This document shows, piece by piece, positions 13,973 through 61,907 of a DNA stretch of 64,000 nt. This DNA comes from Octopus bimaculoides (Eukaryota), in assembly GCF_001194135.2 (NCBI RefSeq), contig NC_068981.1, positions 40,434,198 to 40,498,197 on the forward strand, written 5' to 3'. A program made the position numbers and the translations under genes. Below the pieces are notes generated by a model that made no database searches, was not told where the DNA came from, and saw nothing but the letters and a program-made list of their open reading frames with translations. The stretch's first letter is position 1. Every line of letters begins with the position of its first letter.

Positions 13973-14076
13973 NNNNNNNNNNNNNNNNNNNNNNNNNNNN
14001 NNNNNNNNNNNNNNNNNNNNNNNNNNNNNNNNNNNNNNNNNNNNNNNNNNNNNNNNNNNNNNNNNNNNNNNNNNNN
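13973..14076. other. Assembly gap between (CT)n and (TA)n
   Basis: Run of N. Confidence 1.
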
Positions 14077-14721: not shown

Positions 14722-15545
14722 ATCTTATGGAGTTTCTACCTATGCCTTTTCTACAGATCGAGCAGGGTCATCTACCTGAAGGGATTTGTGGTTTGTCTGC
14801 CTTCCTACTTATTAAGACATTGGTTTTTGCTTGACTGACTCTAAGGCCCTTCGATTCTAGATCTTGCTTCCACACTGAAACTTCTCTAGTTCTGATAGAG
14901 CAAGGTCATCAGCATAAACTCCCAGGGGCATCCTGTCTTGAATTCCTCTGTTATTGCTTGGAAGATTATGATGAATAAGATGGGGCTGAGGACTGATCTT
15001 TGATGGACCCCTACCCCTATCCAGAATTCTTCACTGTACTCGTTGCCAACCCTCACCTTACTGACAGCATCCCTGTACATAGCTTGTACAGCTCTCACTA
15101 ACTACTCATCTATCCCTAGTTTCTGCAGTGACCATAAGATAAGGGATCGGGGAACCCTGTCAAAGGCTTTCTCTATGTCAACGAAAGCCAAGTACAGAGA
15201 TTTATCTTTTGCTAGGTATTTCTCCTGTAGCTGTCTTACCAGAAATATAGCATCAGTGGCGCTTTTCCCTGGCACAAACCCAAACTGCATCTCGTCTAGA
15301 CTGACTTTCTCCCTAATTAGTTGGGTTATGACCCTCTCCGTGACTTTCATTACTTGATCCAACAACTTGTAATTATTCATATCTAATGCAGTTGACTATG
15401 GTGCTGCTACTCCAGTGATTGGGTGACTCCTTCATGTATCACCTGATTGACTATATGGGTGACTAGACTATAGCTAACACCGCCAGATATTTTAAGCATC
15501 TCTGCAATGATTCCTCTGATGGGCCGGAGGCTTTCCCTGTCTTCA
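14722..15545 (-). mobile_element. RTE-clade LINE reverse transcriptase fragment (pseudogenised)
   Basis: ORFs 15102-15380 and 14886-15098: QFGFVPGKSATDAIFLVRQLQEKY..AFVDIEKAFDRVPR..GVHQRSVLSPILF; stop codons and frameshifts. Confidence 0.92.
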
Positions 15546-15552
15546 TACCCTT

Positions 15553-15879
15553 TGTGGCTGTATAGTAGACGTTTGCTTCCCAACCACATGGTTCAGGGTT
15601 CAGTCCCTCTGTTGTCGTAGTATAAGAAATATATTGAAATATGTTGAAACAAGTATAAGAAATATATATATATATAAACCTTGCCAAAACTGACCTCATC
15701 TGTGCTTGTACCACGCAAAAAGCACTGCGTCCATTCTGCAGAGTAGTTGCTGTTAGGAAGGGCATCCAGTTGTAAAAATCCTGCCAAAACAATCACAGAA
15801 GTCTGGTGCAGGCTTCTGCCTGGCCAGCTCCTGTCAAACCATCCCACCCGTGGCAGCATGGAAGGCAGACAATAAATGA

Positions 15880-15943: not shown

Positions 15944-16794
15944 GGGGCAATTAGTATATTTTTTATTTCACGCATTGTTTGTTTTTGATTTTGTTGACTA
16001 TACATTATAGTAGGGTCGGTTGGGCACTGTCTCTGAGAAAAAGCAGCACGATGATGCAATTCAATCTGCCAGAAATTTGGAAAGGACATGCTGTACTGAT
16101 TGGCTTGGCATTTGTGCCAGAAGCTCCATTATGACCATTTCAGAGTGTTTGAGTGTCAATCTGAGAATAGTGCATGTACTGAGAGTGATAAAAATCAAAC
16201 ATTCAGTCAACATTATGGGGTTTGGAATAATCACTAGTGATGGCAACGTTATGCTTCCATTCGCACATGGCTTCACACTCAACATGGAGGCCTACATCAA
16301 GTACCTGGAGGAGGTAGTACTGCCCTGCATCAAGAGAACAGCTGCTGGAAGACCCTGTGTCTAGCAACAGGACTCTGCACCATGCCACACAAGCAGGAGA
16401 ACCCAGTCATGGCTGTCAGACAATTTCTGAAACTACATCACCCCTAACATCCAGCCACCTAACTCCCCAGACTGAAACCCCCTTGATTATTATGTGTGGA
16501 ATGCAGTTGAGTGAGAGACCAACAAAGCTCCTTGTAATACCAAAGATGAACTGAAGGCAAGGATTATGGCAGCATTCACCAACTTAAACAAGGAGACTGT
16601 GCAGAAGAGCTGCAGGAGATTACAAAGTCGTCTGGAGGCCATGTTTGAAGCCAATGGCGATTTTATTGAATAAACTTACTCTTTAGTATTTCAAGATATT
16701 TTTATGTAATTTTAGTAAATATATCTGTTAAAACGAAACGTCATTGTTATTTTCATTTTTGCATAATAGACGACAATATATTCACCACACCCTA
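15939..16794 (+). mobile_element. Internally deleted Tc1/mariner transposon, DD37D (maT-type) transposase relic
   Basis: ..CV*QQDSAPCH..PPNSPD*NPLDYYVW..NGDFIE*; 37 residues between the D of QQD (16371) and the D of PLDY; first catalytic D missing; TA-rich flanks. Confidence 0.85.
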
Positions 16795-17175: not shown

Positions 17176-17200
17176 NNNNNNNNNNNNNNNNNNNNNNNNN
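17176..17200. other. Assembly gap
   Basis: Run of N. Confidence 1.
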
Positions 17201-18384: not shown

Positions 18385-18393
18385 NNNNNNNNN
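18385..18393. other. Assembly gap inside (TA)n
   Basis: Run of N. Confidence 1.
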
Positions 18394-19004
18394 NGCATGA
18401 GTGTATGTATATATATATGTGTGTGTGCACATGAATGTATAGCTTTTGTTTATTTTATGCTATAAAAGCATAAAGTTACTTCATACTGATTTGAGTGGGA
18501 AATGTGCAGCGTGATTTATGTGTTTATTTAAATGTGAGATAAACTGGTCTTCTATTTATCTTCCTAATTCACAATGAAGCAACAAGGTCCACATTACAAG
18601 TATACCTTATTAATCTAATCTCATAAACTTATAGATAAGTTAAGTGCATTCATATCTCAACATACTATCTAAACAGCAGATCAAGAGGAACTTAATTAGC
18701 ATGTTTTCAAATACTATAATATTCAGCAGAGAATCTTTTCCCATGTTTAATCATTTATTTTAAGGTTTATTGATAGAATTACGAGGAAACATTTTACAGT
18801 TAGTGCAATCTTGTCATGCCTGTTTGTTGTATCTTCTATAAACAGCCATTTTTGTGTTAGACATAGAAACGGCAGTTCTTAATTCTAAAACACAAGATCT
18901 ACTTATTGCTAAAGCTTTTAAAAAAATAATAAGGACTGCTTTACCACCGATATGAACTCAATTGCATTCTGTGAAGATGCAATCTCTCCTAGAAAATGCA
19001 TGCA

Positions 19005-42222: not shown

Positions 42223-42835
42223 NNNNNNNNNNNNNNNNNNNNNNNNNNNNNNNNNNNNNNNNNNNNNNNNNNNNNNNNNNNNNNNNNNNNNNNNNNNNNN
42301 NNNNNNNNNNNNNNNNNNNNNNNNNNNNNNNNNNNNNNNNNNNNNNNNNNNNNNNNNNNNNNNNNNNNNNNNNNNNNNNNNNNNNNNNNNNNNNNNNNNN
42401 NNNNNNNNNNNNNNNNNNNNNNNNNNNNNNNNNNNNNNNNNNNNNNNNNNNNNNNNNNNNNNNNNNNNNNNNNNNNNNNNNNNNNNNNNNNNNNNNNNNN
42501 NNNNNNNNNNNNNNNNNNNNNNNNNNNNNNNNNNNNNNNNNNNNNNNNNNNNNNNNNNNNNNNNNNNNNNNNNNNNNNNNNNNNNNNNNNNNNNNNNNNN
42601 NNNNNNNNNNNNNNNNNNNNNNNNNNNNNNNNNNNNNNNNNNNNNNNNNNNNNNNNNNNNNNNNNNNNNNNNNNNNNNNNNNNNNNNNNNNNNNNNNNNN
42701 NNNNNNNNNNNNNNNNNNNNNNNNNNNNNNNNNNNNNNNNNNNNNNNNNNNNNNNNNNNNNNNNNNNNNNNNNNNNNNNNNNNNNNNNNNNNNNNNNNNN
42801 NNNNNNNNNNNNNNNNNNNNNNNNNNNNNNNNNNN
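42223..42835. other. Assembly gap
   Basis: Run of N; the 223-245 aa ORFs here are artefacts. Confidence 1.
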
Positions 42836-52696: not shown

Positions 52697-52953
52697 NNNN
52701 NNNNNNNNNNNNNNNNNNNNNNNNNNNNNNNNNNNNNNNNNNNNNNNNNNNNNNNNNNNNNNNNNNNNNNNNNNNNNNNNNNNNNNNNNNNNNNNNNNNN
52801 NNNNNNNNNNNNNNNNNNNNNNNNNNNNNNNNNNNNNNNNNNNNNNNNNNNNNNNNNNNNNNNNNNNNNNNNNNNNNNNNNNNNNNNNNNNNNNNNNNNN
52901 NNNNNNNNNNNNNNNNNNNNNNNNNNNNNNNNNNNNNNNNNNNNNNNNNNNNN
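52697..52953. other. Assembly gap
   Basis: Run of N. Confidence 1.
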
Positions 52954-53427: not shown

Positions 53428-54112
53428 AGGCACAGGTGTGACCGTGTGGGTAAGAAATTTGCTTCCCAACCACATGGTTCTGGATTCAGTCCCACTGCAT
53501 GGCACCTTGGGCAAGTGTCTTCTGCTATAGCCTCAGGCCAACCAAAGCCTTGTGAGTTGATTTGGTAACCAGAAACTGAAAGAAGCTCATCGTGAGATCT
53601 TTGGAGATATGCTGTGATTGAGAAGACCCAGCAAATAAAGTGGGATCATAGCCATGGCAGATTCCAGTGTCACATAACCAGCCCATTTAAAAGTGCCCTT
53701 GAATTATCAGGTAATATGCTGCCTGTTGAGTCAAGCGAAATTGTAGTCATGGTTGATGTCAGTGCTGCCTCACTGGCACCTGTGCTGGTGGCACATAATA
53801 AGCACCTTTCGAGCATAGATCAATGCCAGTGCTGCCTGACTGGCTCCCCATACCAGTGACACAAAGAAAGTACCATTCAAACGTAGTTGATGCAAGTGCC
53901 CCCTGACTGGTTCCCATACTGGTGGCACATAAAAAGCACCCACTACATTCTTGGAGTGGTTGGTGTTAGGAATGGCATCCAGCTGTAGAAACCTTGCCAG
54001 ATCAGATTGGAGCCTGGTGCAGCCTACTCGCTTGTCAATCAATCTTCAGTCAGACAATCCAAACCATGCCAGCAGAGAAAACAGGCATTAAACAATGATA
54101 ATGATGATGATA
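53428..54112 (+). mobile_element. SINE family A head followed directly by an RTE ORF end and 3' UTR
   Basis: Head runs to GAAACTGAAAGAAGC (about 53586), then GAGATCTTTGGAGATATGCTGTGATTGAGAAGACC (RDLW.YAV.EKT) and the RTE tail with (GAT)n. Confidence 0.75.
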
Positions 54113-54132
54113 TCATCATATATATATATATA

Positions 54133-54408
54133 NNNNNNNNNNNNNNNNNNNNNNNNNNNNNNNNNNNNNNNNNNNNNNNNNNNNNNNNNNNNNNNNNNNN
54201 NNNNNNNNNNNNNNNNNNNNNNNNNNNNNNNNNNNNNNNNNNNNNNNNNNNNNNNNNNNNNNNNNNNNNNNNNNNNNNNNNNNNNNNNNNNNNNNNNNNN
54301 NNNNNNNNNNNNNNNNNNNNNNNNNNNNNNNNNNNNNNNNNNNNNNNNNNNNNNNNNNNNNNNNNNNNNNNNNNNNNNNNNNNNNNNNNNNNNNNNNNNN
54401 NNNNNNNN
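54133..54408. other. Assembly gap
   Basis: Run of N between (TA)n and (TATG)n. Confidence 1.
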
Positions 54409-57551: not shown

Positions 57552-58454
57552 GCACACCAGTTTTTGTAGTGATGATAGTGGAGGATATCGACTCCTTACT
57601 TGTTTTTCTAAAATGCACCATAAATATTCAATAATATTGAGATCTGGGGACTATGGTGGCCAGATAAGATGCTCAACTTCACTAGAATGTTCCTCATGCC
57701 ATTCAGTAACAACTTTAGCTGTGTGAATTGGTGCATTATCATCCTGAAAGATTGCACTTCCCTCTGAAAACAGTTCCATAACCATAGGATGAATTTGATC
57801 AGATAAAATGCTTAAATAGTCTTTACTTTTAATTCTGCCATGAAGGAAGACCATTGGGCTGGCGAATTTCCAAGATATAACCTCCCAGATCATCACAGAT
57901 CCTCCTTCATGTTTAACAGTTGGAAGAAGGCAGTCTGGGTCAAATGCTTCTTTTGGCTGTCTCCACACGTATACTCGACCAGTGGTCTGAAACAGAGTAA
58001 AGGATGACTCATCTGAGAAAATAACATTCTTCCACTGATATGGGACCAATTCCATAGGTTTTTACTCCACTCTAAATGCTTTGCAACGTTTGTTTTTGAA
58101 AGTAGTGGTTTTCTGATTGCAGCCCTCCCATGAAATCCAGCTTTGCACAGCTCCTGGTGAACAGTTTTTGTGGAAACTGGGTTCTCAAGGTAGTCATTAA
58201 GCTCTGCAGTAATTTTGTGAGCTGTACTTTTGTGATCCTTTCTAACAATTTGCGTAAGAGTCCAACAGTCCCTATTTGAAGGTTTTGGTTTTCTTCTGGA
58301 GTTTTGTTTTGACGAGAGGGTTTCTCCTTCTTTCTCAAAGGCTGTCATTACTTTCAAGACAGTACTTCTTGAAACAACAAATATTTCAGCTGTTTTCGTT
58401 TGTCACACGAGCATCAACAATTTGACTTCTTTGAAAGTCTGATAGATCTGTCAT
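57552..58454 (-). mobile_element. Tc1-type transposase pseudogene with DD36E spacing (Incomer-like)
   Basis: MTDLSDFQR.. start at 58454; HTH region; WKNVIFSDES; FQDDNAPIH..WPP*SPDLNIIEYLW with 36 residues between D and E; frameshifts and a TAG; 3' end lost in a microsatellite. Confidence 0.9.
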
Positions 58455-58959: not shown

Positions 58960-59293
58960 TTGTGCCTCAGAGAGGCAAGAGACAAGATGGTGAAGCATGA
59001 TCTTCAAATGTTGAGCTTCATGGAGATGATGACAGGTGACCATGGCAATATGCTGTGCTTGAGAAGACTCAACAAGCCAAGTGAAACCATAGTCATGACT
59101 ATGGCACCCATGCTAGTGGTACGTAAAAAACACCCATTACACTCTCAGAGTGGTTGGTGTTAGGAAGGGTATCCAGCCATAGAAACCCTGCCAAATCAGA
59201 CAGGAACCTGGTGCAGCTCTTCAGCTTACCTGTTCCAGTCAAGCCATCTAACCCATACCACCATGGAAAGTGGACATTAAATGATGATGATGA
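58960..59293 (+). mobile_element. RTE LINE: ORF C-terminus plus 3' UTR
   Basis: VKHDLQMLSFMEMMTGD..YAVLEKT C-terminal motif followed by the same tail seen in the other RTE copies. Confidence 0.8.
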
Positions 59294-59384
59294 TGAATAT
59301 GGGTTCATGAAACACTTACTTCATTAGAGTAAGGAGACTATGGATACCCCATAGAGAAAGGGCACTATGGGTTACCTTCAATAT

Positions 59385-59535
59385 GGCCTCTCCAGTTTAT
59401 GCCAACCAAATTTTAATAAAACTTTTGTTAACACAAGGTTATGGTGGAAGGTATTTGCCTAAAGTGTCATGCAGTGAGATTGAACCTCAAAACATGTTAT
59501 TGCAAAGCAAAATCTTTAACCATACTGTTATGTCC
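59385..59535 (-). mobile_element. SINE family A 5' half
   Basis: CAGTTTATGCCAACCAAAT..CACAAGG..TTGCCTAAAGTGTCATGCAGTGAGATTGAAC..AACCATAC. Confidence 0.6.
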
Positions 59536-59754
59536 ACAGCTGGAACTGAGAATTGAAATGGGAGTGTGGGCTTAGCTCATGTAGTGGGTTTATATTCAAG
59601 AATATTTCCCAAGTAGAGCCAGTGAAAAAAAAAACATCATTAAATACCATTGTGTAAGTATGGCTTCTTGGTGAATGGAGTAAAATGTTTTTGATTTAAA
59701 CTGAATATTTTGTCTTATTTATTTATTTAATAAAAGGAAAAAACAAAAACAGAA

Positions 59755-59861
59755 TTCTTAACCTACACATTTTTTCTTTCTCATTTTTCAGGTAAGTGTT
59801 CTGGACTGATTGATATCTTAAAGTTCCATTAACCATCGATCACCTTCTTTGTCTGGTAAGA
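59755..59861 (+). other. Candidate recursive splice site (ratchet point) with a 64-nt cryptic exon (59792-59855)
   Basis: Branch-like TTCTTAAC (59755-59762), 19/20 pyrimidines (59770-59789), CAG|GTAAGT at 59791/59792, downstream donor CTG|GTAAGA at 59855/59856; stops in all three frames. Confidence 0.55.
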
Positions 59862-59962
59862 TGGAATTGATTTTAACTTTTTCAATACTTATTTAAAATT
59901 TGAAAGTTTTAAATATCAGTTACTATTCTAAAACGAACAATAAAAATATTATATATTTCAGT

Positions 59963-59994
59963 TATTATTATCATCATTATTATTATTATTATCC

Positions 59995-60052
<58 letters not shown>
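59963..60052. repeat. (ATT)n microsatellite
   Basis: Direct reading; source of the poly-Tyr ORF 59900..60142. Confidence 0.95.
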
Positions 60053-60053
<1 letters not shown>

Positions 60054-61794
60054 TTGTCTTGTTGTTATTAAATGGTACTGTTTCATTACTCCGCTTAACT
60101 AAAGCATTTCATCTTGGATATTTGCCTTACAGGTTAATGTAATTGGCCATTACTTACATTAGACAATAATTTTTTGTTAACTATTTCCTCATATGTTGAA
60201 AATTTTTCTGTTTCAAATTAGAAGTCAGAAATATTCTAAAATTATGCCTTCACACTTGTTCTATATAGTTAATATCAAAGAATGAATCATCATCTGTTAT
60301 ATTTTTGCTTTATTATTTTCCTTTACTTTTTTTTTTCTAAATTTTCTACACATTCCTTCTCTTAAAACAGAAATTCAGAATAGGCTTTCTGTCAGTTTTA
60401 ACAAAGATTAAACACTCTCTATTTTAATTGAAAATATCTTTAACAGATATTCAATATATATTTTTATCAAAAACAAATAGTTTGATTAGTTTCCTTTTAA
60501 TGTTGTTTTTCAGGATTTTGATTTGTTACAAATTCATTAAGAATTGGAATTAGAAGCTACCCTTAGTTAAAATTAAAAAAAAAAACAATAAAATTAATTT
60601 TATTCTTTATTTCAGAATGTTTAACAACTCAATTTCCTGTTTCTTTTGTTTTGTTTGATTTTTGTTGTTATTTTTTTGGTTTACCCCTTTGGTTCAAGAG
60701 GATTAAAAATTTTAATTTAAGATTTTGTTTTAAGTTTCAGCTTTGATATAAGCATATTACTTTTCATAATACTCTCATAGCTCGAGGGAAATGATAGAGA
60801 GTGTTTCAAGAAAATTACTTGATATATTAAGTATAAACATATGAAAGATGTTTGTATTGAATATATTTATATTCAAAAGTTAACATCAATAACACCAGCA
60901 GAATTTTTGTTCTTGATACAGCAATGTAAAAATTTTCACTCAGTACGGTAAACATATTTCCTTGAATGTCTTACTATCACTACCAAAACTTAAGTTAGCT
61001 TATATACAAGTTTTTTTTAGCTTCCTTTAAATTTTCAATATTATTCTAAAAATGTCTTTGAGACTTGTCCATTTTTATTAACATTATAAAAGTCAGAATA
61101 TCTTTATATTGTTTAATATTTTCTTTACTTTTTGAAGACTCTAGTCATAGTTTTAGTGAAATTTCATCAATACTAATCTGGTAGTAACTCGAGAAAATAT
61201 TTATTGATAAAAACTCATATATTGTGGCTCACTTAACTAAAGACATTTATTGAAGAATATTAAGGATAAAAGTTATAAGAAATTATGCAGAAAAACTTCT
61301 GAATCCTTTTATTTTACTTACCTTTTCAAGAATTTTAATGGAAATGAAAATCTAAAAATTCTTTGATTCAAAATATCATTTCAGTTGAGGAGTTGATGAT
61401 AAATTCAAATCAATCAGTACATGTGAGGTACAGCATGTTGCTAATTACTACAAGCTTATCAATACTAAAACCAGAGAAGATGCTATTCAAAAAGTTAGAT
61501 AAATCCTTTCAGATTCATACTGATTGTAAATTCAATCTTTGCTTTTAATAAATTAATTTTAAAAAATGCATTTTCTTATTTAAACCATTATTTCTAAATG
61601 TTGTTTTTAATATATCATAACTTTAGCATTAAGATTTTAACCTACTTCAGCATATATTGCTACAAAAAAACATGAGCCACATAGAGACAAATAGGTAACA
61701 ATACTTTGGTTCAGTTGGTTAGAAAAAAATACTAATGGCATTATTATTATTATCATTATTATTATTTTGTCTTGTTGTTATTAAATGGTAGTTT

Positions 61795-61907
61795 CATTAC
61801 TCCACTTAACTAAAGCATTTCATCTTGGACATTTGCCTTACATGTTAAAGTAATTGGCCTGTAAGACAAATGTCCAAGATGAAATGCTTTGGTTAAGTGG
61901 AGTAATG
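61795..61907. repeat. Near-perfect 48-bp hairpin within a local duplication of 60045-60147
   Basis: Arms 61795-61842 and 61860-61907 with one mismatch and one G-T pair; 17-nt loop. Confidence 0.9.

Follow-up and report, generated by a model that had tools for sequence, protein, structure and literature searches.

A site at 59791/59792 of the DNA analysed here (a stretch of 64,000 nucleotides, referred to as the window; slashes mark splice junctions throughout) joins a very strong 3' splice site directly to a perfect consensus 5' splice site. It is proposed to be a Drosophila-type recursive splice site with a cryptic 64-nt exon, acting in a plus-strand pre-mRNA whose exons would lie outside the window. 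Judged from its sequence, a probability of about one half is assigned to this reading. The interpretation is partly supported, and the site is to be regarded as a good candidate rather than as a finding. The presence, quality, and rarity of its signals are matters of direct observation, and the elements that compose it are the following.

59757 to 59762, plus strand: branch-point-like CTTAAC, a YTNAY motif whose putative branch A, 59761, precedes G59791 of the acceptor by 30 nt.
59762 to 59789, plus strand: AG-free pyrimidine tract, with T at -4 to -8.
59789 to 59791, plus strand: CAG acceptor (3' splice site), with the junction after G59791.
59792 to 59797, plus strand: GTAAGT, a consensus 5' splice site and putative ratchet-point donor, directly abutting CAG.
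59792 to 59855, plus strand: putative cryptic RS-exon of 64 nt, not a multiple of 3, with all three frames closed by stops.
59856 to 59861, plus strand: GTAAGA (in CTG/GTAAGA), the putative RS-exon's own, weaker 5' splice site.
59654 to 59659, plus strand: a second perfect GTAAGT (in TGT/GTAAGT), 138 nt upstream of the acceptor and outside the recursive model.

Most of these elements had been reported in the first-pass annotation of this DNA. Inspection of the sequence together with a script reproduced the YTNAY branch motif at A59761, the absence of AG across 59762-59789, and the gapless succession of CAG and GTAAGT at 59791/59792. By script, the 19 of 20 pyrimidines claimed for 59770-59789 (TTTTTTCTTTCTCATTTTTC) and the stop in every frame of 59792-59855 were likewise obtained. 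The second donor, CTG/GTAAGA, is located where it had been placed, with its GT at 59856, 64 nt downstream of the first donor. Features that the annotation did not mention are TT at -5/-6, formed by T59786 and T59787, and the greater strength of the GTAAGT donor relative to the one downstream. On both strands of the window, 59770-59797 is the single site at which 19 of 20 pyrimidines are combined with CAG/GTAAGT. Every sequence-level property of a ratchet point and of a cryptic RS-exon that can be examined on DNA is present at this site.

In the proposed mechanism, branch A59761, the tract at 59762-59789, and CAG would form a very strong 3' splice site bound by U2AF and U2, U1 would bind the downstream donor at 59856, and the two splice sites would jointly mark 59792-59855 as an exon of 64 nt. 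Joining of the upstream exon to G59792 would release the first intron segment as a lariat branched at A59761. This ligation would put exon sequence ahead of GTAAGT, regenerating a consensus 5' splice site that would out-compete the weaker GTAAGA at 59856. The 64 nt would be removed with the rest of the intron, leaving no trace of themselves in the mRNA (a 'zero-nucleotide exon'). Failure of the regenerated donor would leave the 64 nt, with their stops, in the mRNA as a poison insert, and this mRNA would probably be degraded. We infer transcription, strand, use of the site, and outcome in this scheme. The donor of the ratchet point matches at 6/6 positions (GTAAGT) and that of the RS-exon at 5/6 (GTAAGA). 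The predicted duplex with the 5' end of U1 amounts to -14.0 kcal/mol for CAGGUAAGUGU versus -8.0 kcal/mol for the CTG/GTAAGA donor, both values referring to the genomic context, whereas positions -3 to -1 would come from the upstream exon after ligation. Since the regenerated donor is the stronger one, skipping of the RS-exon is predicted.

In Drosophila, ratchet points are tandem acceptor/donor sites in long introns, fronting a cryptic exon of ~50 nt with its own donor. The cryptic exon is recognised first and is then removed, as the regenerated donor out-competes that of the exon (PMC8605326). For recursive sites, 3' splice sites of exceptional strength have been reported (PMC6110457), and of 197 ratchet points in Drosophila, 196 have TT at -5/-6 (bioRxiv 10.1101/006163). 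Strong conservation of the acceptor/donor core, set against a poorly conserved exon body, separates real fly ratchet points from look-alikes (PMC8605326, PMC6110457, bioRxiv 10.1101/006163), and the fly introns that harbor ratchet points range from 11 to 133 kb. With the intronic ratchet points of Ubx, kuz, Bx, and luna (Burnette 2005; Duff 2015; Joseph 2018/2021) the site shares the motif (Y)nNCAG/GTAAGT and TT at -5/-6. As in these, its pyrimidine tract is stronger than those of ordinary 3' splice sites, and no exon is found within tens of kb. The putative RS-exon also resembles its Drosophila counterparts, being short (64 nt here, ~50 nt in the fly), stop-filled, out of frame, and followed by a weaker downstream donor. 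Unlike the Drosophila sites, it belongs to a non-arthropod, probably a mollusc, with a far larger and repeat-richer genome, and it is known from its sequence alone, whereas those of Drosophila are characterised by their location in long sense-strand introns, ultraconservation of the core, junction reads, sawtooth coverage, and lariats.

RS-exons of vertebrates (Sibley 2015; Blazquez 2018) follow the same logic of exon definition and subsequent competition between the regenerated donor and the exon's own. Their sequence features, YAG/GT with a downstream 5' splice site and premature stops expected upon inclusion, are found here, and unlike the looser YAG/GT consensus of the vertebrate sites, the motif at 59791/59792 has the stricter, fly-like form. 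In vertebrates, approximately nine fully suppressed intronic recursive sites have been noted definitively, and most RS-exons are annotated and included (PMC8605326). The site also shares features with intronic pseudo-exons or decoy exons, namely an acceptor-donor pair around a non-coding body in non-exonic DNA. A consensus 5' splice site at the start, however, is not usual for pseudo-exons, in which signals of such strength rarely come together.

The distribution of the motif among animals was described by Shepard, McCreary & Fedorov (2009), who counted ratchet-point motifs in introns longer than 50 kb against the complementary strands (PMC2773006). The sense/antisense ratio was 21.7 in the fruit fly, far above 10 in the mosquito, 8.0 in the beetle, 4.0 in the bee, and 8.2 in the sea urchin, an enrichment of the sense strand by 4-22 times in all five invertebrates examined, versus at most 1.5 in eight vertebrates (PMC2773006). 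The motif is under selection well beyond Drosophila. That data set uses the same motif definition and consists of genome-wide statistics that include no mollusc, whereas a single site is described here. The enrichment among invertebrates raises the prior for a site in a mollusc and renders it less surprising. If the source genome behaved like those of vertebrates, which it resembles in repeat load and, if it is that of an octopus, in size, the motif alone would be a poor predictor.

The rarity of the site depends on the number of signals that are considered together. By itself, AGGTAAGT is found at about chance frequency, as had been stated beforehand, with 2 occurrences in the window, both strands counted, versus 2.27 expected from shuffles. 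Y6NCAGGTAAGT with at most one mismatch occurs once in the window, at an expectation of 0.23. Among the 7,340 AG dinucleotides on both strands, 15 are preceded by at least 18 pyrimidines in 20 positions and 2 by at least 19, and 2 of the 7,340 directly precede GTAAGT. These counts yield a joint expectation of ~0.004 sites per window at 18/20 or more pyrimidines. In 4,000 windows simulated from a 4th-order Markov model, for which the window served as training sequence, the rates per window (both strands counted) were 0.0198, 0.0020, and 0.0003 for at least 16/20, 18/20, and 19/20 pyrimidines, respectively. The core composite is expected ~0.002-0.005 times per 64-kb window at 18/20 or more pyrimidines and 0.02-0.04 times at 16/20 or more, values that come from simple null models and from thresholds set after the site had been seen.

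The additional signals lower these rates further. A GTRAG donor follows 25-125 nt downstream at 12-15% of random positions, 14.8% by one count, which multiplies the core rate by ~0.13-0.15, and the tighter GGTAAG falls within +25 to +125 at 2% of them. Of the 122 AGs of the window with a strong pyrimidine tract, 41 have an AG-free YTNAY at a suitable distance (a factor of ~0.34), and just 5 have an AG-free YTAAC 18-45 nt upstream. Jointly, second donor and branch motif multiply the core rate by ~0.05, making the composite ~20 times rarer. With a fair threshold fixed in advance, ~1 full composite per 500-1000 windows is expected, and one of the quality seen here is rarer by one to two orders of magnitude. 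In 1 Gb of such sequence, ~15-30 chance composites are expected at the loose threshold and ~2-4 at 18/20 or more pyrimidines, and a genome of 2-3 Gb would be expected to hold tens to hundreds of chance sites at the looser thresholds.

Within the window, five other AG/GT sites have at least 16/20 pyrimidines upstream, and their donors look random (GTTTAT, GTATAT, GTGGCA, GTGTTA, and GTCAAA). Since these pyrimidine-rich sites carry poor donors, 59791/59792 is a clear outlier. When the window was searched for additional ratchet points, the remaining pyrimidine-rich AG/GT sites had poor donors and no second candidate emerged. The sole other acceptor-like site with 19/20 pyrimidines lies at 778-798 on the plus strand (GCCCCCCCCTTTTTTTTTTCAG) and is followed by TATTAA, with no donor. 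Acceptor-like sites with at least 18/20 pyrimidines number 11 on the plus and 4 on the minus strand; the T-richness of the plus strand raises the chance rate of such tracts there. The site is a real statistical outlier, and a large genome would still hold some look-alikes.

The first-pass annotation had placed the site deep in an apparent giant intron. For the search for a host gene, stop-to-stop open reading frames were collected in six frames, those in in-window repeats, transposon frames, and low-complexity sequence were removed, and the remainder was ranked by amino-acid composition. Neither the best 85 frames (40 aa or longer; 4,983 aa) nor a further 152 (22 aa or longer; 4,973 aa; E<=10) had a match among 5.8 billion proteins. 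These 237 frames, ~10,000 aa in total, represent a search that is blind to non-coding exons, to exons shorter than ~22 aa, and to genes that the database lacks. Pfam returned nothing for the four most protein-like frames, and exact-product look-ups of three frames of the window, including a 37-aa minus-strand frame that spans the site, gave no record. A window without a detectable coding exon is compatible with a giant intron and with an intergenic desert equally well. Of the earlier claim, the lack of any recognisable exon stands, but the location in an intron is unsupported, as intergenic DNA fits equally.

Base composition provides a hint at the strand. Sense strands of metazoan introns are typically U-rich. 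In the masked window, T exceeds A on the plus strand in 8/8 bins of 8 kb (skew -0.037), and this strand contains 77 runs of at least six T versus 43 such runs of A, and 48 pyrimidine runs of at least 12 versus 28 purine runs. The skew is weak to moderate evidence in favor of plus as the transcribed strand.

The window has a G+C content of 33% and contains 124 tandem-repeat arrays and several families of interspersed repeats. Its assembly gaps and the transposon remnants recognised by Pfam are listed here.

13973-14076, 17176-17200, 18385-18394, 42223-42835, 52697-52953, and 54133-54408: six runs of N that mark assembly gaps, together 1,285 N, mostly flanked by (TA)n or (CA)n arrays.
15105-15395, minus strand: fragment of a reverse transcriptase (RVT_1).
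57651-58402, minus strand: frameshifted remnant of a Tc1-like transposase (HTH_Tnp_Tc3_2, weak DDE_3).

Since the assembly is of draft quality with six gaps, small exons could be hidden. The best relatives of the Tc1-like transposase, with 74-85% identity, are intact and occur only in Logan, ENA, and TARA marine contigs, and its named relatives are Tcb1 transposases of spiders. Open reading frames at ~16014-16670 on the plus strand, adjacent to the RVT_1 fragment, had no Pfam match and are presumed to be mariner-like. A SINE at 1984-2371 has a tRNA-like head and itself carries GTG/GTAAGT; it presumably corresponds to a very abundant octopus SINE that it resembles. On this resemblance a cephalopod origin, called probable in the first-pass annotation, is plausible; the relatives of the transposase are not informative in this respect, and three strings derived from the SINE had no match in the full text of the literature searched. 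Other fragments of its family lie at 15554, 18083, 21520, 24035, 34497, 43410, 53428, and 54466, 8/8 on the plus strand. A second family (reference 53750-54132) has 8 members on the plus and 4 on the minus strand, and a third is mixed. Selection acting within a transcription unit could be the cause of such a bias in orientation.

The candidate itself lies within a stretch of ~430 bp that is bounded by a SINE-like fragment, whose end is near 59528, and by an (ATT)n array that starts at ~59960. A self-BLAST of 59529-59961 found no copy in the window beyond short low-complexity matches, so the statement that the site lies outside any repeat holds within the window. Membership in a repeat family was rejected, as there is no in-window copy, and the inverted and direct repeats seen locally amount to the (ATT)n array and weak AT-rich matches. 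No Rfam family matched the window at its gathering score. A U1 snRNA was considered for the U1-snRNA-like ACTTACCTG on the minus strand and rejected, there being no Rfam match at gathering score in the window and none at E<=1 in 59000-60600; ACTTACCTG is merely the complement of the donor and not a U1 gene. A tRNA or SINE head as the identity of the site was dismissed as well, as no tRNA was found, and no JGI metagenome contig matched the site when scanned with exact 25-mers. Nearby, a 122-bp segment at 60027-60148 is duplicated at 61740-61859 with 94% identity beside (ATT)n arrays, and is also found inverted at 61858-61907. It is probably the tail of another short repeat family.

The main competing explanation is a non-functional coincidence, in which an unusually good acceptor-like tract lies next to GTAAGT by chance, in DNA that is AT-rich, T-rich, and repeat-laden. 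This is a serious possibility, held at clearly below an even chance, and the same weight is given to its variants taken together, i.e. that the DNA is intergenic, that it is transcribed on the other strand, or that it is intronic with the site being ignored or spliced as a noise-level pseudo-exon. The chance-level frequency of AGGTAAGT is in its favor, as is the expectation of the core motif with at least 16/20 pyrimidines in 1 per 25-50 such windows. Yet at the stringency observed, a few such sites per Gb or fewer are predicted. Loose acceptor-donor pairs of the pseudo-exon type are common in the window (7 on the plus and 14 on the minus strand), but the donors of its other pyrimidine-rich AG/GT sites look random. 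A coincidence would also agree with the failure to recover any gene or exon in the window from the protein search of 237 frames and the exact-product look-ups, and with the motif being barely enriched over antisense in long introns of vertebrates (PMC2773006). Moreover, the site was picked by eye for looking perfect. It would nonetheless have to account for 19/20 pyrimidines, TT at -5/-6, CAG, a 6/6 GTAAGT, YTAAC 30 nt upstream, and GGTAAG at +64 occurring all together, each at its best form.

It is also conceivable, and considered improbable, that 59792-59855 is an ordinary expressed non-coding exon (5'-UTR, lncRNA, or poison) that happens to start with GTAAGT. A constitutive coding exon at this position is excluded by stops in all three frames. 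In one form, this explanation takes 59654-59791 as a conventional intron of 138 nt (GTAAGT ... TTAAC ... Yn CAG) of an unannotated plus-strand transcript. The normal signature of an exon is present, with a good donor 64 nt downstream of a strong acceptor; by chance, however, only ~3 in 10,000 exons would begin with GTAAGT at the base composition of the window. The perfect GTAAGT at 59654, 138 nt upstream of the acceptor, would supply the donor of that intron. The chance of a GTAAGT within 200 nt is ~4%, given 27 GTAAGT on both strands of the window, but at the candidate upstream exon, 59540-59653, the acceptor is mediocre (12/20 pyrimidines) and every frame contains stops. Mammalian exons capable of recursive splicing are mostly annotated and included (PMC6224609, PMC8605326), which agrees with an expressed exon; in any case, an exon beginning with GTAAGT would itself be capable of recursive splicing.

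For a functional site, formal estimates that combine the chance rates, the gain from second donor and branch motif, and a prior split between invertebrates and vertebrates are above 0.6. They were discounted, since the null models are simple, the thresholds post hoc, and the context is not established, to arrive at the probability given at the outset for a recursive splice site at 59791/59792.

Cephalopod genes are thought to have very long introns. How these are accurately removed is not addressed in the literature searched, which also yielded no paper on 'recursive splicing' together with 'octopus'; the lone co-occurrence with 'cephalopod' consisted of two unrelated references. The first-pass annotation knew of no description of recursive splicing in cephalopods, and this holds in the literature searched. 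The novelty is nevertheless less than it implied, because enrichment of the motif is already known in every invertebrate examined, including the sea urchin (PMC2773006). That a working fly-type ratchet point exists in a cephalopod, i.e. lophotrochozoan, gene is suggested tentatively on the basis of sequence, at somewhat short of even odds.

If true, no recursive splice site would have been documented before in an animal other than an arthropod or a vertebrate, and a third major animal lineage would be added. Zero-nucleotide recursive splicing would then be a pan-bilaterian solution for giant introns, and the mechanism would persist in a genome of vertebrate size that is rich in SINEs. It has been suggested that intron folding mediated by repeats replaced ratchet points as genomes expanded, and persistence in a SINE-rich genome would run contrary to this idea (PMC2773006). 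One unvalidated motif alone changes little; from the enrichment in other invertebrates, the phenomenon is already to be expected. In practice, the site is of use as a prompt for a genome-wide count of sense versus antisense motifs and total RNA-seq. Once validated, it would provide a concrete locus at which the ancestry of fly-type cryptic exon definition and donor competition could be tested.
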